Notes under the pieces: model-generated
Told to the model about the DNA's origin: nothing
Seen by the model: only the letters and a program-made list of their open reading frames with translations
The model's database searches: none
In this document: positions 6,140 to 44,176 of the stretch, in pieces
Position numbering within the stretch: position 1 is the first letter of the stretch
How the letters are laid out: the number at the start of each line of letters is the position of its first letter
Assembly (NCBI RefSeq): GCF_041956535.1
Contig: NW_027192200.1
Coordinates: forward strand, 391,477 to 455,476
Reading direction: 5' to 3'
Source: Calcarisporiella thermophila CBS 279.70
Lineage: Eukaryota > Fungi > Calcarisporiellomycota
DNA length: 64,000 nucleotides
Made by a program: the position numbers and the translations under genes

Positions 6140-9100
6140 ATGGACGCCGGTATCATTGCTGTTATAGTGATAATCTGTACTCTAGTTGCAACCCTGGTTC
6201 TCCTCTATACGTTATGGCGGTATAGACAACGCGGCACCCTCCAGCACATTACGACCTCCTCGGTCGCGTACGACCGTGAGAGATATGGGCATATCCTTAA
6301 CTGGGACCGCCATTCCCTTTCCATCCACGGCCGTCGCACTCTGCTGTATTCAGGAGAGTTCCACTATTGGCGCCTTCCCGATCGATCCCGATGGGAATCG
6401 GTGTTGAAGAAATACAAAGCCGCCGGACTTAATTGCGTACGAATATACTTCCACTGGGGGTTCCACTCACCACGCGAGGGGGTGTATTTGTTCGACGGCA
6501 ATAGGGACGTAGAATATTTGTTGAAGCTGTGTAAGGAGCTGGGACTATGGGTGCTTGCTGCACCGGGGCCGTATTTGTGTGCCGAAACGAACGCCGGCGG
6601 ATTTCCCTCATGGTTAATGGCTAAGCCCAACATTCTAGTACGACATTATGCCTTTTTTCCATTTGGAAAGCGTTACGACCCGGAATTCACGCGCTACTCT
6701 TGTGAGTGGTTACAAGCAATTCTCTCTATTCTCTCCCGTCATCAGATTACTCGCGGGGGACCTGTGCTGGGGCTACAGCTGGAAAACGAGTTGTTTGAAA
6801 TTTTGTTTGGGATTATCCCCTTTGGATTATGCGATGAGATGCGCGTTTTAGCCCAGTGCGCCAGGGAGTGTGAGATCGAGGTGCCACTCTTCCATAATGA
6901 TGGATTTGAGAATGCCAGTTTTATAGCAAGGCCGGAGCTCGACAGGAAAAAGAGCTGGTTTTGGAGGAGAGGCTTCGGGCTGGACTGGTACGGCTTTGAC
7001 AAGTACACTGGTAGTGCATTCTCTGCCTCTAAGTGACATCTACGAGGTCCATTAATCATTGTATTGCACTTTACTGAATAGTGTGGGTGCCAACGAGCGA
7101 TATAAAATCACATCTTATAGGTAATGAGTTGACTCCCGATAAATGGCCCGAGTGGGATCCAAAAGTCGTGGAGCAGGGCTTTGACAAAATGGAGACAACG
7201 GTGCGGGGTTACGGATCCGCTGCGGCAGAGGTAATCCTTTTTTCACTTTGTCTTCTTGAAAACGCAGTCTCAATTCCCTCCCCCCAACCCTCCCCAATAG
7301 TCGCCCATTTTTATCCCTGAGCTTCAAGGCGGCTGGTTCAACCACTACCGGCTTCCCAACTCCTATGACGACATCTACTCCTACTACGGATCCACCTTCA
7401 CGCGGCTTATCTTCGACACTGTCTCATCTCAAGGCTGCACTATGCTCTCATATTATATGGTGTATGGGGGCACCAACTGGGGCTCATTGGGCGACCCAGA
7501 TGTGTACACGTCCTACGACTACTCTGCATGCGTGAGAGAATATGGCTACACGTCGGACCGAGCGGGACACCTGAGGTTGGGGATTTTGTTTGCGAGGAGT
7601 TTTAGCGAGCATTTTGCACGCACGGATCGGGTCTCGTCAAACGTTCAAACGGTTCCCAACGTCATCACAACGCAGCGAGAATCAGAGAACAAGGTCCGCT
7701 TTACTTTCCTTCGCAACTTCAATCGCTCGCGTCCTGCCCAGTTTTCTGTGCATGTGGCTCTGACGAGCGGCCTAGGAAATAAGCGAGCGCTAGAGCTGCC
7801 CTGTCATCTTCCTTACAAGCGCTCGTTCATTGCACTTGGAAACTATGTGACTTCGAACAATTTGGCACTTGTATTTTCGACGCTCCCGGTGCATGCCAGG
7901 ATGCGCTCCAGAGAAAAGGTAGAGGGGATTGGAGAAGTGGAGGTTTGGATTGTGGAGGCAAATCCTAACGGTGCCATGGCATTTGAGGGAGAGGTTAATG
8001 TCGAGGGTTCAATGCAACCTAAAGTAAAGAAACAGGAGGATATTTCAATCGTCCAATTTGACAAGGAGGTCGGCTATACCCGCTTTACCACCCCGACTGG
8101 TACCCTTTACCTCCTTGGGTTGGATCATCCTTCACTAATGACCCTCCACGCACACTTTGATCCGGAGCAGATGGATGATCTCCCCCAGTTCCTCGCATGG
8201 GGAGCCCATTGCATCTATTCCACCAACAATGAGCTAGAAATAAAATACACCCCCGACCAGCACTCGCTCTCGCTCTTGACTTTCACTGCCACGCCCGCTG
8301 CCAACGACGGCAATGATGAAATCTTCTCGCCCGACCCTGAACTATCTTTTCTATACAAAAAGCGTCTCGGAAAACCACCCCTCACTATCGGAAGCGACGT
8401 GGTGCTCACCGACTGGAAAGAGCAAGTCGTCGATTTTGGCTCTATGCCCTGGACACCACTCACCTTCCACGGACACAAGCCGGTAGATAATGCCATTTCC
8501 CTGTGCTATACAAGTGGTCATTCCCTCTACCACTGCCGGTTTACTCCTAGTCCAAACAAACCGGTGAAGCTCCGCCTCAACGTAAGACACCGAGCGACAG
8601 TGTACGCCAACGGCAAACTGGTTGGCGGCCATACCACCTACTCGAGACAGTTATTCTTCGCGGGGGCGAAGATAGGGCCGGACCCCTCCTTCTGCGGGGC
8701 CACCACCTACGAACTAACCCCTTATCTTCAGGAAGGAGAGAATGACCTGTTCATTATTGTGGACTCCTTTGGCATGTCGCGTCAAGCCTTCGTGATGAAT
8801 GATGCGAAGAATCCGCGCGGCTTATTGAGCGCAAAACTGACCAACGTCCAGAATGCCTTGTGGGAGGTGGCCGGGCGAGACGTGCGCAAGTTGGAGCATC
8901 CGTACAACTCCACTGGCTTCCCCGATGAGTTTGCCGAAAAGAACTGGAAGGAATGCCCAGGCTTACTCGTTGAAAAGGATAGGGTGCGTTGGTTGGAGTT
9001 TACGTTCCGACATCCTATTTCCCTTGCTGCCATCGAGGATCCTTCTCATGACGCCGAGGTCCCTCTCCGCCTCCAACTCAAGGGGAAGTTCACGGCAGTG

Positions 9101-20720: not shown

Positions 20721-21861
20721 TTCTGGATATACCAAATTATCTATCTATATCGATCTGCGTAACAAAATGGTAGTACACTCTTTGCTTGCGCACTTTTCCC
20801 CCCTGAAGAATATAGTGTAATTGAAAAAATATCAGTTGCAAGAAGCGGGGATAAATAGTTTTTTCAATAATACGATAAACAAATAGTATGAAAAGGTAGA
20901 GAGATCGCAACAGCGACGAGAGGTAAGAAGACGGGGTCAAAAATACCAGGCTACTTGGGATGTAGGATGCTAATAAAGAATATCCTGAAGAAAATCCATG
21001 AGCATCTTTCCACCTCCCACAACTGTGCCGCACATCACGTGATATAAGAGGACCTTGAAGGGCTTCAATCAATTGACAAATCGATACAAATTCGATGTAG
21101 ACTTTAAGATCTTAACTAATGTATAAAGCATCGTGTCATACAGACAGCCTTGACGGACGTTGAATATTATTATCTACAAATATCATGTACAATATCAAGA
21201 CAAAAAGAATTGCTCTATCAGTTCAGCAACTGTATTTGATCGCAAAGAAAACTGTAGCTCTATTGTATTGTATTCATAGATATGGAAAGTTTGCTTCTTG
21301 CTCTCCTTATCATTTAACGATAACATTTTTCTACGATTACGAAAATTCGGGTAATAGTTTTACAAAGTAGTTAGTTAAGAAAGAGTTGAAAGTCCACTGC
21401 CAAGATGACAAAGCCGAAGTATTTAGTCACGCCATACCCAAATGTCCAGGATGAAGAATAAGAAATACAATGAGCTTAAAATTTATGGGTAAAAGACTGA
21501 TTGTGTTATCAATGGAATTGCTTTGAACTAGATGAATGTATAGAGGTATAAATATGGTAGATTTAGCAATTTTTTTTCGCTCTTATTCTCGGAAATGCCC
21601 ATCTTCTATACTGTAGTATGCAAAAGATGAGGTACACCTTCATTACAACTTGCAAATGAGGAATTTTTTTCCAAATGACACACTTCTATACCATTTGAGA
21701 AAACTCCAAGGTGGAGATAGAACGCGAATGAAGAGCTTTCTTTTTGAGAAAAGTTTATATAATAGAATCGAGAGAGAGATCAAATGAGGGTGAGATCAGA
21801 GAGGCTAGAACTCAATAAACCTTTTAATATTTCTTATTAACTAAACGTCTTAATATAGGTG

Positions 21862-23372
21862 GATATTGCATGATGCCACGGGATATTTGTTCTAACCCAT
21901 TGCTGGTTTATCATGTTACTTGTTTAATGTCTGACACGGAAAACGGCAAATCTTATGAAACCCTTTAGCTACTTGAACTTTCAAATCTTCTAAATTCCAT
22001 TAAAATTAAATGAATGCTGTGGTATGGTTTTGAACAGATAATAGCAGGACCAGCTGCATCTTGATTGTTTGCCATCTACGCTTAAGAAAACCTTGCCATA
22101 TAACTCCAGAAATTTATAATTTTAGAGAACGTAAAGTATCATTGGGCTTAACACATGACTCGTATGACCGTATTTGCTTTTCATTCTTGTCTCTGGCTAC
22201 GATACTGTTTGGGCAAGTTGACAAAAGGCACCATTTCATTGTCACTATTTGATAAGAGCTGAGAAAGAATTTTTTTATAGTTTTACTCAATATGGTTTTT
22301 ATTCGGTTATTACATTATTAAAAAAGAAATATTCCCATGCATAAAGCATCTACACGAGGAGGAGAGTAGGTTTGCAATTTAGCAAAGTATCCTCACCCAA
22401 CATCCGCCAGCGCTAATCCTAGAAGTCCATAAGCGAGGAGTAGTTTGGTAACTGCTCGAAACTTTGTGGATACATACCTGGTATATGCGTTCAAACACAT
22501 CTACATTATAGCCTTCAATCTGCAAAAGGATGAAGCTAAACGCATGCATATTTTACATCCTGTCTTTAAATATTAAGAAGAGATCACGGTCCCATATTCT
22601 TATGCGCAAAATACTAGTAAAATTTTTCGGAGATAATCCCATAAAGCGGTATGTAGAAGGTTCTCATCTAAGATATCTCTTATGTTGGATCAGAATATTC
22701 GTCACCGATCGAAGATAAAATGTTAAATCCAAGCTAATATAGAATAATTAAACTCTGTCATATTAACATTCTACGAAGCATGCACGGAGATCGTGTGAGT
22801 CCGGCTATCCCCTACTCCGCCTAAGAAGTTGGGAGAGACGAGTGCCCTTTGGGTCAAGGATGAGGTATCCACTTTGACGAGGTTTTTGGAGCAGCTGTAT
22901 GCACTGCAGCATTCGTTTTCAAATTTAATCGTACTCCTTTAAAATTGGAGAATCCTAAATGATAAAAAGAGCAAGAAAATCTGGTTTTCTCTTCATTCAC
23001 GGGATTGAGATCATGCGTTTCGCTTATGCATTCATGAGAAAGCAAATAATCGACATGCCATATAAGTCATACACAGGCTTTCCTCTTCCTCTCTGGAGAA
23101 GTATCATTTTGTATAAACTTTGTTATATTGAAAGCCCCTATCGCTGTCCAAATCAAACGCCATGAGAATCCTGCAGGCACGGAGTTTCTTCTTCATGCAT
23201 TAGCATTCGAGTTCGGAGTAAAGCAACAAAATATTCTCATAGATTCTGATTTAATTCTTGCAAATTTTTCATTTCTTATAAATATCGAGGCTCCTTCGCG
23301 AAACCAGGCCAAAAAAACCACAATTCACTACTTCACACTTTCGCAACTTGGAAAATCTCAACTGAGCTGAAA
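21862..23372 (+). repeat. Duplicated upstream/promoter cassette, copy A (precedes 112-aa ORF)
   Basis: Colinear diverged homology with 23967-24521 and 24733-25861. Shared words include GCCACGGGATA, ATAGCAGGACCA, GCCATCTACG..TAAGAAAAC, GAGGAGGA..GTAGG.TTGCAATTTA, ATTAACATTCT, CTGCA.GCACGGAGT and TATAAATA. Boundaries approximate. Confidence 0.8.
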
Positions 23373-23711
23373 ATGCCGTTTTATGTACACATTATTCCTC
23401 GCCATAACAGCCGCGAGCGCAGATACTTGGGGGTGTTCCCGAACGAAAAGATCCTAGATGAATGGTATGAGACGGCCAAGCGTGTGCGGGAGCAGAACAC
23501 GAATAAAGGCAAATACCTCATTGAGAGGGTATCTCCCGAGTGGTATACCTTGCCTGAGCCGGAAGATGTACGACAATTTATTGACGACGTGCAGCGACAA
23601 GAGATGAGTCAGTTTCAAGACAGGTGTTTCTGGACATTGTTGGACGATGTTGGCGGTCGGCAGATGCCCATTGTGGGAAAGCAACGCTATCATCAAGAAC
23701 CCGAGCCCTAG
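23373..23711 (+). CDS. Uncharacterised intronless 112-aa cytosolic protein
   Basis: Clean ATG-TAG ORF, GC-richer than its flanks, TATAAATA at 23277-23284, no signal peptide. Confidence 0.75.
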   Translation: MPFYVHIIPRHNSRERRYLGVFPNEKILDEWYETAKRVREQNTNKGKYLIERVSPEWYTLPEPEDVRQFIDDVQRQEMSQFQDRCFWTLLDDVGGRQMPIVGKQRYHQEPEP

Positions 23712-23966
23712 GCTATTCGAATGCGTCGTTGTTTACAATAGTGTCTTTAAATCTTTTAGGATATATTTCAAATCCTTTTATTGATTTTTTTGCCACTATT
23801 GTTTACTTTTCTTACTACAAATAAAAAGACTCGCTCCTATATCCTTTGTGGAAACTCAATGAGAAGATATATCGGGAATCGAAATATGATCGATTAAGAA
23901 GTGACCAAAGTGGTGAAAATACATTACGCCATTTAACTTTTAAAGTCAAATCTTTTAACATAATTA

Positions 23967-24521
23967 GATATTGCATGGTGCCACGGGATATATGTTCTAA
24001 CCCAATACTGGTTGATTCTATTATTATTTGTATATAATCTAATACGAAAGGGAGAACTCACTTTTGGGTCGCTCTAATTGACAAAAATCACCAAAACTTA
24101 TGAAAGCCACTAGTTTCTTGCTTTCAATTCACAAAAATTCCATTAAAAATAAATGAATGCTTTTGGATGACTTTGAACAAAAAATAGCAGGACCAATAGC
24201 GTCTTGACTATTTGCCATCTACGCGTAAGAAAACTTTCCAGATAACTCCAGAAATCCCTATTTTTCAGAGAATATTTTAGTTTCATCGAATTCACTATAT
24301 AAGTATTCATTTGCTCCTGCACTTGTTTCATGCTGCGATACTGTTTGAACAGGATGACCCAGGACACTAACCTTCCTCATACTCAACCTTTCTAGTTCGG
24401 AGAAAAATCTTGGGGAAAATATTCTCGTAACCCCTGATTTATGCCATGCGACATTTCCCCAATTTTTTTTTATTCCTTGCGTTTTTTGCAAGATCAACCA
24501 AAAACTAGAACCAAATTCAAT
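23967..24521 (+). repeat. Duplicated upstream/promoter cassette, copy B (internally deleted, TATA degenerated)
   Basis: 23967-24370 matches 21862-22240. 24411-24521 matches the core promoters at 23225-23330 and 25750-25861, but TATAAATA is replaced by a T-run. Confidence 0.8.
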
Positions 24522-24704
24522 ATGAATATTATAAAGCAATTCTTGTTCGCGTCTGTTGCGGTATTCGCCGTAGTCAACGGGGTCTGTGTGAGATATTGCA
24601 TTGAATGCCCTCCAGGAACACGTTGTGAAAATCAACCACTCTATTGTGGGCAAGGAGGCTATCCACCATAATATCGTATTCGTTGCGTTGGGGGGGATTA
24701 TTGA
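24522..24704 (+). pseudogene. Secreted Cys-rich peptide, copy 1, with premature stop
   Basis: MNIIKQFLFASVAVFAVVNG-VCVRYCIECPPGTRCENQPLYCGQGGYPP*YRIRCVGGDY*. TAA at 24669-24671 aligns with AAT (Asn) of the paralog and removes the sixth Cys. TATA box lost. Confidence 0.75.
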
Positions 24705-24732
24705 TAATATGACTCTGAACAATTATTATCCG

Positions 24733-25861
24733 AACCAGTCGCATCTAGACCAATTATTGCTATCTACTGGTAAGAAAACCTTGTCATATAACATCTAAAT
24801 ATTATATTATTAGAGAACGCGAAGTCTCATTGGACTCAACATATGACTCGAACGACTGCATTTGTTCCCACTCCCGATTCTGTTTGGATGGGATGACCTT
24901 GAGTACTCTTTACAGTTATCAATTGATTTGAGTTGTGGGAAAGTTTAACTATTGTTTTACCCGATATGACTTCAATCTTCGTTTTGGCTGCATTGAAAGA
25001 GAAAGCGAATCTCACCCATAAACATCCTTCCGTCGAGGAGGAAGTAGGCTTGCAATTTAATAAAGTTGCATCCGACATCTCTATACCTGGAGGAATTGTC
25101 CAGGGTACATGGAATAGCTTGGTAAAGACTCAGACCTTCGTGGATGCATCTCACGAATGTTGATCCACAGTTACGTCTACTCTAAGGCTACATAGAAGGA
25201 GGCTCTCACTGACACAAACAGAATATCTGATGTATTATATCTGATTGCAAATTGCCGACCGAAGAATAAATTTCAAACCAATACAAATTTAGAATAATTA
25301 ACCCTGCCAAATTAACATTCTCTTTCCACTACTAAGCACGTATGGAGATTGTGAGAGTGTTCTAACGCCCTCAACTCCGCCCAAGAACTTGAATGAGTCG
25401 AGCTCCTCTTTGGCGTCTTTACCGGACCTTCGGAGCAGCTGCATGCTCCGCATATTTTGTTTGCAAACTCTATCATACTATTTCTAAAAATGGGGAATCC
25501 AGCATGGAAAAACAAAGCAGGTATATCTGGACTTTTCCACACTCGCTAGAGTTCTTCGTTATTGTGTTCATGAGAGGTGGTAACCATTTCTTAATATGGC
25601 GTCTAATCCATACACAGACCCTTGCTTCTCTTGAATAAATGCTATTTTATATGAACTCTATTAAATTGCAAACCTTCTATTGCTTTCGAATCATACAATA
25701 TGAAAATTCTGCAAGCACGGAGTCTTTTCCATATGTCAGAGCAAAGCTTTCAATGAAAAGTTCTCGTCACCCTTGATTTAAGCCCTGCGACTTTTTCCCA
25801 AATCTTTATAAATACCGCGCGTTTTTCGCAAAATCAACCAAAAACCAGAACCAATTTCAAT
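24733..25861 (+). repeat. Duplicated upstream/promoter cassette, copy C (precedes intact peptide gene)
   Basis: Colinear with about 22050-23340. TATAAATA at 25807-25814. Confidence 0.8.
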
Positions 25862-26044
25862 ATGAATCTTATTAAGCAATTCTTGTTCGCGTCTGTTGCA
25901 GTTTTCGCCGTAGTCAACGGGATCTGTGTGAGACGTTGCGATGAATGCCCTCGAGGAACCCATTGTGAAAATGAACCACTGATTTGTCGAGATGAAGGCT
26001 ATCCACCAAATTATCATCTTCTTTGCGTTGGGGGGGATTATTGA
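25862..26044 (+). CDS. Small secreted six-cysteine peptide (60-aa precursor), copy 2, intact
   Basis: 20-aa hydrophobic signal ending VNG, then mature ICVRRCDECPRGTHCENEPLICRDEGYPPNYHLLCVGGDY (C-x3-C-x2-C-x5-C-x6-C-x12-C). Paralog 1.3 kb upstream. Confidence 0.8.
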   Translation: MNLIKQFLFASVAVFAVVNGICVRRCDECPRGTHCENEPLICRDEGYPPNYHLLCVGGDY

Positions 26045-26855
26045 AATAGTTTTGATGCACTTATATTTCGAAATCACATATTATTCTCCATATGTTATTT
26101 GGTTTATCAGGTTTTGTGGAAGCTTAAGCATGTTGACTAAATAACAATAATAAACAGGAGGCGGCTCCGACTTAATTTCTATACTATATCTTGGCTTCCT
26201 TTTATATATATGGAACAAAATAATTAGCAGAGTTAAAATATATAAATTGGATAAGAGAACAATATACATGATTAATACTTTATAGGCAACTAGATAAATA
26301 TAGGTGCCCAGCAAAACATTGGATAACCACAGCACATAATAAGCGTGGACGACCATACTGCGATATACACGAGCATAATACCATTAAGCAAGCGTTTCAT
26401 TCTTGTACATTCAATTGCTACAATTCTATGAAAATTATAGGATATATTTCCAAACTTATAACTGGCTATTCATTATGAGCTGTGAAAATCAGTTAAACAA
26501 GTCGATCCCAGTATAAATTTCTATAATAAAGAAGATTAAATGATATAAGGACAACTACTGAGTATTTGACCAAAACCACATTACACTGTAATATATGCTG
26601 AATTCTTATTAGGGAGAGGAGAGGGACATTTTTCTTTATTTTTGAGTTGAAAAATGAAAACCTGACACAATAAAATATTGGTTTGCTATTATTATTTTGA
26701 TCCAAATAATAAAATATATCCTCTCTAGAGAGGACATTTTATATCGACTACGGCACATATATGCGTACATGGGATATATACGCGCGAAATAAATAGCCAA
26801 GTTCGAAGAGTCGAAATGGAGGGAGAGGTTTAGGCTCTAGAAAGCACCCGACCAA

Positions 26856-28045
26856 CTAGAGAGGCCGCTGTCCGCACACAATCACAATGGTGTACATCAG
26901 GAATGACCCCTCAAGCTCGGCGATCTCGATTTCGTCGACAATCTGCTGCACATGTGAAGCGTCGAGAATTTCCCCTTCCCAACCTTGGGGAGGCCCAATG
27001 GGAGCCATGTGCTTTTTTAGCTGTGACGCCATCCCTGATATACTCTCGAACGCTTTTACCTTATTCAAGCGGCCCAGCTCGGTGCTTTGTCCAATTGGGA
27101 GCGGATAACGAGCAATATGCAAGTTTGTGAGGCCAGCGGCACGAGCACGGTCTTCAAGATGATCACCGGCTTGTAAATCGAATCCGCGTTCCTGGAACAT
27201 CTGTGATACTATTGCGATGGAAATACAAGAGAGTGATGAGAACCCATAGAAGTTGCATTGAATTCTGAAGGCTACACGTTAAAGCGTACACATCCCCATT
27301 CATGGGCAACGCCTCCCTCCATATTCTAGAGATGGCGTTGTCCAAACACGGGCAAAATACTCACAGGCTCTCCTGTACCATAAGAGATTTGGCAAAGATT
27401 CGGGATATTTCTCTTGGAAGTTCCACTCTGCCAATTGCACCCAGCCTCCAGGGCGCGTTACGCGTACCAGCTCTGTAAGTGCTGGTCCCCATTGCTGCTG
27501 CGATAATGCTCCAATAAGAAGGCGCTGATGCACCAGGTCAAATGCTCCATCTTCAAATGGTAATCCATCTAAAACATTGGCGCGCAAAAAGCGAGTGTTC
27601 GGCGGAGAGTGTGTTGGAAAGCCGTGGTCGCTAATATCGACTCCAATCACCTGCGCGTTTGGATATTCGCGGGCGACTTCTATCGCCCAAGTACCAGACC
27701 CCGTCGCCATATCGAGTATCTTACCTTCAGAGGTATTTAGACTCTCAATGGATTTGGGGACGTGGATGTTCTTACTATTTATTGCCGAGGTATAGATCAA
27801 ACATGAGAAAAAGTATGGAGAAGTGATTTAGTCATTTTCAGTAAGAAAAGTGAATTGAAGATGTTCTTTGCATCCAATCAATTTCGTTTTCTTCTTTCTC
27901 ACCTATCACTCGCCATTTTTATAATACGATGTTGGGCAATCAATCTCTCGATTTCTCTCTTGTCGCATGGTAGAATATAAGCTGATCCCTTTACCTTGGC
28001 AAACTCTCGGTTGCCTTGTACAGTTACTTCGGTCTCGTGGGTCAT
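26856..28045 (-). CDS. Class I SAM-dependent methyltransferase (LaeA-like family)
   Basis: Exon 1 YILPCDKREIERLIAQH, motif I ILDMATGSGTW, VIGVDIS, GLPFEDGAFDLVHQRLL, ELVRVTRPGGWVQLAE. Two introns. Confidence 0.9.
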
Positions 28046-35465: not shown

Positions 35466-38400
35466 TCAACCAAAGGTCTGCGAAACCCGGGTGTGCCGCT
35501 TCATCTTGCTGAGTCGCCACTCGTTTGGCTTCTCGTATTTGTTGTAGAGCGGCTCGACCCGCTCTTGTCTCTTGCGCTTGCTCATCTTGTACGCGTCGGC
35601 GACCTTGAAGAATCGAGGGGCAAACTCCGTCAACCACTTGGGCTCAATGGCCGTCACCTCGCGCATGTACTCTTTGGAGGTGAGCACCAATTCATGGTAG
35701 ATCACCCACTCGGGATTTTTGTTGTAGAGCGCGCTCGACGGATGGATGTAGACGGGGGTGCCTTCGACGAGGGTCTTATAGCCCTCTTGGGGATCCTTCT
35801 TAGCGGCATTTCGGAAGAAACCACCCACTAGTGCCCTTCGCACACGATCATAGTTGCGCCCACAGGAAACAATGTCGTGCTTGTAGCGGTCCATGATTCC
35901 CAGCAGCTGCTTCCGCACGTCTTGCGCTCGCTTAAGGCTGCGTGCCTGTATAAAGTTTTCGTAACACCATGCATTCGAAAACTTACTCGCCTTCCATGCA
36001 TTATATACGGCAAGCAGGGTCAAGTGGTCGCCCTCCGGCTGATGAAATTTGGCTTTGCGCTGGTCAGCCTGCGACTGCTTTTCCTTGGGGCGATAGAAGA
36101 TGGTTTGATCGGAAGAGAGCATCGCGACGATGCTCAAAATTTCGTCCGAACATCCCAGCTCCACTGAGAGAATCAACATCTTCGACAGGGGCGGATTCAA
36201 CGGGAACTCGGCCATCTTGCGTCCGAGGCGAGTCAGTAGCCCCTCGTCGTCGAGGGCACCAAGAGCATATAGCTGCTCGAGGGCAGTGATCATCGTCTGC
36301 ATCGGGGGAGGGTCCATGAAATCGAAGTTGATCAAGTCGTTGATGCCCATGGCTTTGAGGGTCAAGACGCGGTTCGCTAGATTCATGCGTTGAATTTCAG
36401 GTACCGGGTTCGGAAGCATCTCATTGCGGAAGGCTGATTCGGTGTACAGTCGGTAGCATTTCCCAGGACCGGTGCGCCCAGCACGGCCTGCGCGTTGGTT
36501 TGCTTGGGCTTGGGAGATGGGCACCACGACCAGCGAATCCATCCCCAGTTTAGGGTCATATGAATTTTGCTTCACAAATCCTGGGTCCACCACATAGTAG
36601 ATGCCATCGATCGTGATCGATGTTTCCGCAATATTGGTCGCAATCACGACCTTCCTAGTGCCAGGCGGAGCAGGTTCAAAAATACGCGACTGCATCTCAC
36701 TTGGAAGAGCAGAATACACAGGCAAGATAATCAGTTCGGGCACGTCCGAGCCCAGAGCTTTCATCCGTTCATACAGAATCTCACAGGCAGTGTCAATCTC
36801 CTCTTGACCCGTAAGAAACAGCAGGATGTCACCCGGCGGTTCCGAGAGATGGATCTGCATCACAGTAATAAGCGCAGCATCAAGGTAGTCCGACTCGGGC
36901 TCTTTCGTGTACAGCTTCTCGACCGGGAATGTGCGTCCAGGGATGGTGAAGATGGGACAGTTGAAAAAAAACGACGCAAATTTCTCTGCATCCAGTGTTG
37001 CAGAGGTTACGATGAGTTTTAGGTCGGGCCGCTTCCCGCTTGCAATAAGTTTTCGTAGCAGCCCAAAGAGCACATCTGTGTCCACGGTGCGTTCGTGCGC
37101 CTCATCGAGCATGATTACCGAGTATTGCGATAGTTCCGTGTCCACCAGACACTCACGCAACAGCATACCATCCGTCATGTATTTGATCTTTGTCGCAGGG
37201 CTTGTGCAATCCTCGAAACGAATTGAATAGCCCACCTCCTCTCCTAACCGGCATCCCACCTCCTCCGCCACACGTTTGGCCACGGACATGGCGGCAACAC
37301 GACGGGGCTGAGTGCATCCGATCTTGCCCCGATTCGCGAACCCCTCTTCAGCAAGGTACTGTGTCATTTGCGTGGTTTTGCCCGACCCCGTCTCCCCCAC
37401 GACCACCAGCGCTTGGTTGCGGGTGATGGCCTCAACCAGTTTCTGTCGCAGCTTGAATATTGGTAGGCTTTCTCGCTGCTCTTGGATGGACATGTTGGTG
37501 ATTTTGCCGAAACTTGTCGCAGCACCAAACGTCTTCTTTTTCCACTCGGGCAACTGGCCCGCTCGTAGGCCACCTGCTGCTCCTCGCAGATCTTGGGCAA
37601 AGTGGCGTTCGTTGTTGGCCGCCATCGGGTCGAGCCATGGCTGGTTGATATCGCGAGGCATTTGCGATTCGTCCTGTTGCTGTTGCTGTTGCTGGCGGAG
37701 CTCGCGTCTCTCTTTTGCCAAGGCTGCACCCGCTAGCGCAGCACGATTCATGGTACCATCTGGGGCCTTTACTACCTTAACTGGACTCAGTTCGAGGGAC
37801 CGTTTCGTTTGACCCCGTAAGAAGGGGGGCTCCTCTTCCTTCAGTTCAATATCGAGCTCTTCCTCCGCTTCTTCTTCCTCATTTAGAACGAAGCCTTGCT
37901 CTTCATCATATCCAGGATAATCCTTCGGATCGAGGGCACCCGCCGCAATAAGTTGCTTAATCTCCCAGCGCTCAGGGGAAGAGAGACGTTTGACGCGGGA
38001 GCGGCGATCATCGTCCCTAGACATTCTTGTTGATTGTGCATCCTCATGACTGATGGCAGGGCGATCAGGATTACGTGGTCTTGATGAAATCAAATCTTCG
38101 GCAGTTATCTAGAGTGGTAAAAAAGTCATTAGAAACCCAGATCTAGACCTTCACGACTGCGATCTATATGCATACCCAAAGGGGATTATCAGGAAACGAT
38201 AAACCAGGGAATTTTTGCCTCTTTTGCTTGACATCATCGAAACTTGAATCTGATCCATTTGTCTTGCGCTTTCCTTTGTCCTTTCGGGGCTTAAGAGTGT
38301 GGATAATACGATCCAGATTCTCTATGAAAGATTCAGGGAAATCGGCCTCCATCTCTTCTAATTTCTTTTTGAAATCGGCAAGATTCTTTGATTTTCCATG

Positions 38401-42780: not shown

Positions 42781-44176
42781 TTAGGGCAAAGCGACAGTTC
42801 CTTCACTACGATAGGCTCCACTCTTTTCATGGCTAAATCGCTTTGAAATCTGCACACTAGACACTCGATAAGAACCGAAGTCCGTATCACCAAAGCGTGA
42901 GATTATAGGTCTTGCATCGAAGGCGATCCGGCCGCCAGGCTTGCCATGGTTCCCCGGGGCTTGTTTGTTGAACGATTCCCGATACTTGGTGTTGACGAGG
43001 GTTACATGGGGCTACCAAGAAACTATCAGTACAGACCCAGTATATTCGTGAAATAGGGTCTCGAATACCAACCTTCAGTGGCTTGTCCTCCTCCATATAT
43101 CCACCCTTAACGAACTTGTCCCTCAACAATTCTAGCATGTATATCACAGTTTGAGCTATTTCAGTATCACAGAAAAATAGAATGGGATAGTACCGCATAG
43201 TTTTTCCATTGCCTCTCCCTCCACTTTCGCATACAGCACGTGTGCATTGCTAGGATCCGTCTCCATCACTCGCACGCCTTCCACATTCACTCTCACACTC
43301 CTTGTTCCAACTGCATCATATATTTCCTGTGCGCTCTCCTTCAGCAGTCGAACACATCCTTCGATTTCCTTCTGCGATAGCAACCGAAGCATTCCTACCG
43401 TGATATGGAGAGATCCGGTTGGAACTAGAATCGTGGAATCGAGCCCACGCACATTGAGCGCAAGTATATCGCCATGAAGAGTGCTAATGCGTCGGATGAG
43501 AGCAGGGTCGGAAAGAGGAAGGGAAATGAAATGAGTGAACGGAATCTTCGACCTAGACTATAAGCGAAGCATTCCATGAAAAAGAGGGCTCCATTTTTTA
43601 CAACAAAAGTCGACATTTACTCGCTCAATAATGTCCTCGATTCGAAGTTTAGCGGCTTCTGTAGATTCCCTGGTTCCTCGAATAACTTTGAACCAACTAC
43701 TTTTAGCATTCCTCCCTGATGAAGTATTTTCCTAAAATTTGCATACTTATTAAGTCCTGTTCTTTCTGTATGTTTACTTTCGCACCAGTCTCCTTTTGAA
43801 TCTTATTGATAGCTTCTCCCCCACGACCTAATTAGCGTAAGAATAAAGAGTATATAACGGCCACCAGGTGTGATTATAGGGATGAATACGAGACGCACCG
43901 ATTATAAATCGGTGCATTGCCTGCACCACTTCCATTTTGACACTAATAATCTGCGTATTGCTCTTTGTTTCATTATCAGTTAGTTTTCCCGCGTTATCTG
44001 TAGTCGAGTTAATATTAACATTCTGCCTATTTGCGTTGAAATTCTGAACTACCTATGTTAATGCTTTGGACTTCGGGCACTGGTATAGTATTGGTTGGGA
44101 TCCTAAATGTGCGGCCATGCAGCTCAATCAGCGTTATACCGCGCATACATGGGGCGTTCTCGGAATCTGAATACAT
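42781..44176 (-). CDS. ASCC1: ASCC1-like protein (KH domain plus AKAP7-type 2H phosphoesterase)
   Basis: N-terminal LIELHGRTFRIP, KH loop RFII|GRGGEAINKIQKETGAK, FTHFISLPL, 2H motifs HITVGML and HVTLVNTKY. Confidence 0.85.

Follow-up and report, generated by a model that had tools for sequence, protein, structure and literature searches.

Local duplication can place an existing promoter in front of sequence that it did not originally serve. In Drosophila yakuba, tandem duplication yields chimeric genes and genes with recruited sequence, through recruitment of promoters and 5' ends (PMC5460883, PMC6776367). In Fusarium oxysporum, mimps are described as short miniature inverted-repeat transposable elements (MITEs) that lie in the promoters of many effector genes (PMC3599309). 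The present analysis concerns a locus in Calcarisporiella thermophila CBS 279.70, a fungus assigned to an early and isolated branch of Mucoromycotina (PMC10079182). At this locus, three related copies of a non-coding upstream block precede an open reading frame (ORF) for a 112-residue protein, ORF112, and two copies of an unrelated gene for a six-cysteine peptide, pepB and pepC. The locus lies in a 64,000-nt stretch of contig NW_027192200.1 (the window), and all positions are given in the numbering of that window. Tandem arrays of small secreted cysteine-rich protein genes are ordinary in fungi, the mig2 cluster of Ustilago maydis being one example.

The D. yakuba genes are one point of comparison. 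There as here a local duplication appears to set an existing promoter and 5' end before unrelated sequence, with breakpoints near gene starts and no mobile element. The C. thermophila locus differs in that the duplicate is old (~0.47 substitutions per site), in that the join falls in the 5' leader with no chimeric protein, in that the recipient or the donor is an intact conserved gene, and in that further duplication and decay followed. With the mimps the locus shares the presence of a common DNA block 5' of unrelated small secreted-protein genes; the block here is 1.1-1.6 kb long, occurs at one locus only and carries no terminal repeats where it ends. Like the cysteine-rich arrays, pepB and pepC are head-to-tail copies of promoter plus coding sequence; the signal peptide is conserved, the mature part evolves fast and one of the copies is in decay. 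Unlike in such arrays, one of the three units bears an unrelated, non-secreted and conserved gene behind the same block.

Read from its sequence, this arrangement was probably produced by local segmental duplication and deletion, and not by a mobile cassette, with the result that one gene came to stand behind a copy of its neighbour's promoter. The mechanism is an ordinary one, and the outcome is uncommon and well preserved. The interval from 21.7 to 26.1 kb is AT-rich (31-39% GC) and gene-poor in appearance, and it holds three direct-repeat units. Unit A consists of a distal block (U_A), a main block (P_A), a unique 42-nt leader, ORF112 and a unique 3' flank reaching to ~23857. Unit B consists of U_B and P_B (23858-24521) followed by pepB (24522-24704), and unit C of P_C (24705-25861) followed by pepC (25862-26044). 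The features, all on the forward strand, are as follows.

21745..22022 (+): U_A, the distal upstream block common to units A and B only (left edge fuzzy, 21745-21765; from boundary alignment)
22023..23330 (+): P_A, the non-coding block upstream of ORF112, colinear with P_C (from self-BLAST and MAFFT)
23277..23284 (+): TATAAATA box of unit A, 96 nt 5' of the ORF112 ATG (aligned to the unit C box)
23331..23372 (+): unique 42-nt leader of ORF112, free of ATG and without homology to units B and C
23373..23711 (+): ORF112, an intronless gene for a 112-aa protein without a signal peptide (phmmer match to a Gigaspora rosea protein)
23712..23857 (+): T_A, the 3' flank of ORF112, AT-rich and confined to unit A (neither the peptide genes nor the DNA downstream of them match it significantly)
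23858..24521 (+): U_B and P_B, the third copy of the block, with an internal loss of ~0.95 kb (junction near 24367-24372) and a decayed TATA box
24522..24704 (+): pepB, the peptide paralogue with a premature stop (TAA at 24669-24671, codon 50)
24705..25861 (+): P_C, the block upstream of the intact peptide gene, starting 1-4 nt past the pepB stop codon
25807..25814 (+): TATAAATA box of unit C, 55 nt 5' of the peptide ATG (aligned to the unit A box)
25862..26044 (+): pepC, encoding an intact 60-aa precursor with a signal-like hydrophobic N-terminus and a six-cysteine mature part

The homology of the upstream blocks carries this reading. A sensitive self-BLAST matched 22023-22475 of unit A to 24708-25149 of unit C (64.5% identity, E 4.5e-42) and 22673-23330 to 25223-25862 (63.5% identity, E 4.2e-51), both matches being colinear and in direct orientation. 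In a global MAFFT alignment of A and C, 722 of the 1116 ungapped columns are identical (65%). Unit B matches unit A at 23876-24367 (to 21765-22231) and at 24372-24522 (to 23188-23330), so placed that it has lost ~956 bp internally relative to A; in the U part, A and B are 69% identical over 252 columns. The units are thus adjacent, directly oriented and colinear, with E-values across units from 1e-42 to 1e-87. Pieces of P of 160 nt scored 49-63 against 13-14 for a dinucleotide-shuffled null, and none of 300 shuffles reached the observed score. Low-complexity or chance homology is ruled out by these E-values and shuffle controls, and the self-comparison that a preliminary description of this DNA had proposed therefore confirms the repeats as well as its claim that the region upstream of the peptide gene is colinear with that upstream of ORF112. 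The same description had recognized a third, internally deleted copy before the pseudogenized peptide; the copy is real, and only the extent first given to it (23967-24521) was too short, since it runs from 23858 to 24521.

The blocks end sharply at or near the genes. The TATAAATA boxes of A and C align with each other, as do ~45 nt of A/C-rich leader beyond them, and the homology of unit A then ends at ~23330, a position aligned with the ATG of the peptide gene; the next 527 nt (23331-23857) are unique. The alignments therefore uphold the earlier observation that homology passes through the boxes at 23277 and 25807 and the leader and stops at the coding sequences. In unit B the TATA box has decayed to a run of T. 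The B/C junction is a clean head-to-tail join, at which homology to the 3' end of pepC stops at 24704-24709 and homology to A from 22023 onwards starts at 24708. Boundary alignment places the A/B junction near 23858-23876. Homologous genes are not present in all three units: pepB and pepC are homologous and ORF112 is unrelated to them, and this is the anomaly behind the finding.

That the coding sequences are unrelated, as had been proposed together with their different predicted localization, was borne out by several comparisons. ORF112 with its leader, compared with the peptide region, gave z = -0.7, and an anchored extension test for a relic of the first peptide codons in the ORF112 leader gave p = 0.3-0.5; ORF112 lacks a signal peptide and the peptide has one. 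The idea that ORF112 is a diverged peptide gene, or that its leader hides a relic peptide start, is rejected on these values. A tblastn search found no decayed copy of ORF112 near the peptide genes and no copy of the peptide near ORF112. A 40-nt match between the 3' flanks (23744-23783 and 26425-26464) reached z = 4 against plain shuffles, but 25 of 300 dinucleotide shuffles attained its score and it was not used. The weak peptide matches at 42916-43029 of the window and on contig C2 do not mark further peptide genes; the one on C2 lies inside a 333-aa ORF. ORF112 and the peptide are each uninterrupted ORFs and the neighbouring genes appear as several ORF pieces. The contrast between intronless cargo and intron-bearing neighbours drawn in the preliminary description is accordingly correct as an observation, but it is uninformative as evidence, because the two ORFs are so short and the homologues of ORF112 in Gigaspora and Sphaerobolus are uninterrupted too.

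ORF112 belongs to a family of small proteins. An exhaustive phmmer search returned ten of them, with E-values from 2.2e-32 to 1e-3, and eight of the ten could be traced to fungi or assemblies. The nearest relative is glomeromycete, a 109-aa protein of Gigaspora rosea (RIB27437.1; E 2.2e-32, 49% identity over ORF112 residues 1-106). Weaker relatives of ~105-112 aa occur in Dentiscutata, Metarhizium (XP_065985806.1), Sphaerobolus (KIJ24974.1) and further assemblies. The family motifs RY..F, DEWY/W, W/FYT and F..LL.D.GGR..P are all kept in the aligned ORF112 sequence. Two further phmmer matches, to SpaA-repeat proteins whose Pfam domains suggest a bacterial origin, are spurious. ORF112 has no Pfam family and no signal peptide, and it is single copy in the genome. 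Its GC content is 50% (59% at third codon positions, GC3), close to that of the Prp22-type helicase ORF at 35466-38093 (GC 54%, GC3 62%) and unlike that of the surrounding DNA. To judge from its homologues across fungal phyla and its native-like composition, ORF112 is a genuine, old resident gene.

The AlphaFold2 model of ORF112 has a mean predicted confidence (pLDDT) of 77 and the order beta-beta-alpha-beta-beta-alpha-beta. Against the Protein Data Bank it gave no informative match (Foldseek best E 0.12; VIA-align best Z 4.5), and an Atlas fold search retrieved unnamed Ascomycota proteins of 235-267 aa with TM-scores of 0.65 and 0.59. The family, which has no Pfam entry, is patchy across Glomeromycotina, Ascomycota and Basidiomycota. 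One member, from a metagenome contig in ENA, bears an N-terminal extension resembling a signal peptide, with flanking cysteines, and so the family appears to have both secreted and non-secreted forms. The Metarhizium homologue spans 369 nt (8001-8369 in the numbering of its own locus) for only 105 aa, and thus has a short intron.

The peptide is of a different character. Its gene has just two copies genome-wide, pepB and pepC, which are 84% identical at the nucleotide and 75% at the amino acid level. No Pfam match above noise was obtained, and a word search, which does not exclude distant kin, found no word-sharing relative; among named cysteine-rich toxin and knottin families no curated profile or sequence matched. 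Language-model neighbours in the Atlas are toxin-like cysteine-rich peptides of mixed families with scores of at most 0.85, which is a lead only. The GC3 of 34% is near non-coding composition. The ratio of nonsynonymous to synonymous substitution rates (dN/dS) between pepB and pepC is 0.08 in the signal part and 1.75 in the mature part, the latter value mixing possible diversifying selection with the decay of pepB, in which a cysteine codon past the premature stop is still in place. With its orphan status, its GC3 and its fast mature region, the peptide looks like a young orphan that is predicted to be secreted. ORF112 is clearly older than the peptide gene, but age does not tell which of the two first owned the block.

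Duplication and deletion would account for these observations as follows. The non-coding block of U plus P (~1.6 kb, ending at the peptide start codon) would have been copied inside the 4-kb interval, most economically by a tandem duplication that spanned the block and one gene. A deletion would then have removed the second copy of that gene and fused the copied block to the start of the neighbouring gene; a mirror-image route is equally possible. Because A and B share U as well as P, their pair can be written as U-P-X-U-P-peptide, where X stands for leader, ORF112 and flank. The outcome would be a natural promoter capture, in which the core promoter and leader of one gene, in copied form, also serve its neighbour. 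The pair pepB and pepC would have come from another tandem duplication, of P and the peptide coding sequence, and this one would have excluded the 3' flank, because the B/C homology joins 1-4 nt past the pepB stop. The later decay of unit B, which is still under way, would have cost it its reading frame, its TATA box and ~0.95 kb of P. Since that duplication ended so close to the stop codon, pepB lacks a 3' flank and continues directly into P_C, which may explain why pepB is the copy that decays. Both peptide genes are overlain by long antisense ORFs on the reverse strand, one of 154 aa at 24258-24722 (-) and one of 99 aa at 25778-26077 (-). Compared across the two copies, these ORFs have a dN/dS of ~1 (0.171/0.179) and no Pfam family matches them, so that they look like by-products of the sense frame.

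Two observations weigh against this history. Both edges of the peptide coding sequence are homology breakpoints, and duplication with deletion needs chance, together with selection for working fusions, to place them there. In addition, the distances between units misfit one simple tree. In the distal block, Jukes-Cantor distances are nearly equal (0.34 for A-B, 0.39 for A-C and 0.44 for B-C), whereas in the proximal promoter B and C are 0.35 apart and 0.54-0.62 from A, whose proximal promoter is its most diverged part. The 5' part of unit B is nearest A (73-86%) and its 3' part nearest C (84%), the last 290 nt of B and C, coding sequence included, being 84% identical. The point at which B switches lies within ~50 nt of its deletion junction. 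An extra step would thus be needed, either gene conversion that homogenized B and C in their 3' parts or the origin of B as a chimera when its middle was deleted.

The rival that survives best is a swap of cargo. It starts from an array of three promoter-peptide units, in one of which, unit A, ectopic DNA with ORF112 took the place of the peptide coding sequence and its 3' flank, having arrived by repair-mediated insertion, ectopic recombination or transfer. Such a precise ectopic replacement is the main alternative to duplication and deletion, and we regard it as improbable. It would fit the end of homology in unit A a few nucleotides from the position of the peptide ATG and the unique 527 nt that follow, as well as the fact that the single-copy ORF112 forms an island of 50% GC in surroundings of 31-38%. 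On the other hand, no donor copy was found in the genome and unit A holds no relic of the peptide coding sequence or of the DNA downstream of it. The GC and GC3 of ORF112 match those of resident housekeeping genes and not those of foreign DNA. Further, a swap requires a precise insertion in addition to a deletion, where duplication and deletion suffice.

A second rival holds that the secreted peptide and the 112-aa protein are partners, as toxin and protective or processing factor, and that promoter sharing was kept for their co-expression. In its favour, A and C both keep the TATA box and the initial ~45 nt of the leader, the two genes share a strand and are separated by 2.2 kb, the mature peptide changes rapidly (dN/dS 1.75), as is common in defence and attack peptides, and the language-model neighbours, again as a lead only with scores no higher than 0.85, are toxin-like. 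Against this rival, the blocks are 35% diverged, and the longest exact match between A and C is 13 nt against 14.5 in the null, with six runs of at least 10 nt where five are expected. No islands that might serve as footprints were found in P beyond chance, the TATA box being one 9-nt run among many. Because run lengths fit uniform neutral decay, there is no sign of a constrained module across the 1.1 kb, and the earlier proposal of a shared regulatory module gains no support as far as constraint on the whole block is concerned. The proximal promoter of A is moreover the most diverged part of the block (Jukes-Cantor distances of 0.54-0.62), and ORF112 has no informative fold match. No peptide-like neighbour was found at the four loci of ORF112 homologues that were inspected (the Gigaspora rosea locus and a contig of another assembly, Metarhizium and Sphaerobolus). 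The suggested set of secreted toxin and cytosolic partner thus gains no support, and a selected two-gene module is distinctly unlikely. The substitutions that separate A from C are roughly symmetric (232 transitions and 162 transversions, a ratio of 1.4), and the mutation bias of repeat-induced point mutation was not seen.

The preliminary description had also pictured the block as a reusable cassette loaded with unrelated genes, or as the end of a decayed non-autonomous element. Searches of the 28-Mb genome with the DNA of units A and C returned the local units only, which also sets aside a common transposon with copies elsewhere. A 24-nt motif from the block was confined to this locus genome-wide with up to 3 mismatches, and the window has no other internal repeats. 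No inverted repeat of at least 30 nt was found; shorter ones lie inside P, away from the edges at 21745, 23330, 23858 and 24705. The unit boundaries show no terminal inverted repeats, no target-site duplications or duplicated flanks and no Helitron-like ends. In tblastx, the P blocks matched in all frames alike, with no preferred frame. Ten ORFs from the blocks gave no Pfam hit above noise and no transposase or helicase relics, and among RNA families the region gave a single sub-threshold match to Rfam. The block is thus neither reusable nor loaded in the sense proposed: it occurs at one locus, and its distinct cargos number just two, pepB and pepC being ordinary paralogues in tandem (84% identical). 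The absence of dispersed copies, of terminal and target-site repeats, of Helitron-like ends and of coding relics is equally at odds with the end of a decayed element. A fossil non-autonomous transposon (MITE, Helitron or Pack-type) that captured or mobilized small ORFs is therefore highly improbable, since the one feature that speaks for it, a ~24-nt inverted repeat pair within P of both A and C, is internal and not at the unit edges, has its sequence nowhere else in the genome (3 mismatches or fewer) and lacks a target-site duplication at its arms, and the genome holds no other copy of the block and no transposase or helicase relics of it.

The arms of this pair lie at 25043-25067 and 25654-25678 in unit C (88% complementary) and at 22365-22388 and 23116-23139 in unit A (~70% complementary by hand count). 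The pair bounds 636-775 bp and predates the split of A and C, and its left arm ranks with the most strongly conserved parts of the block. Possible readings of the pair are a solitary, fossilized MITE and a palindrome with a regulatory role.

A second case of local promoter copying was found on contig C25 (82000-91999). There, an ORF for a secreted SH3b-like protein (2594-2896) and a class I hydrophobin gene (ORF 7042-7368, first ATG at ~7066) stand 4.5 kb apart. They share ~110 nt directly 5' of their ATGs, which are 71% identical overall and 85% in a 52-nt core and include a TATAAAAAGA box. Within that piece the shared stretches are as follows.

2468-2578: shared upstream stretch of the secreted SH3b-like ORF
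6953-7059: shared upstream stretch of the hydrophobin gene

As in the window, the pair shows what appears to be a local copy of a neighbour's promoter, TATA box included, before an unrelated gene. The locus in the window differs in being about ten times longer, in having three units and in pairing a non-secreted with a secreted gene. Apparent promoter copying is thus seen to recur at least once in this genome.

Whether local promoter copying onto unrelated neighbours is a recurrent route of rewiring in this lineage, mostly among genes for small secreted proteins, with the present locus as its largest and oldest case, is a more speculative matter, and we consider it doubtful. If it were so, the locus would show that the regulon of a young secreted peptide can take in a conserved intracellular gene, or vice versa. 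Taken alone, the locus would be a modest structural curiosity. Should both genes fire from the copied TATA promoters, it would represent a clean natural promoter capture, in which duplication set an entire upstream region before an unrelated gene without a protein chimera, and at ~35% divergence it has been preserved long enough to raise the question of how far common regulation persists. With the promoter copy elsewhere in the genome added, the frequency and fate of promoter duplication could become measurable in an early-diverging fungus.

The interval is flanked by a multi-exon RIC1-like gene that ends near 19.0 kb and by a methyltransferase gene at 26.9-27.8 kb on the minus strand. Exact-sequence look-ups of window proteins gave no match, and the exon of the flanking methyltransferase had no relative above 52% identity. 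The latter gene (26856-27800, minus strand) encodes a class I S-adenosylmethionine-dependent methyltransferase and shows up as two ORF pieces. The best relatives in databases are only 45-52% identical, and the named ones, from Agaricales and from bacteria (Dormibacteraeota and Ktedonobacterales), stand at a similar level.

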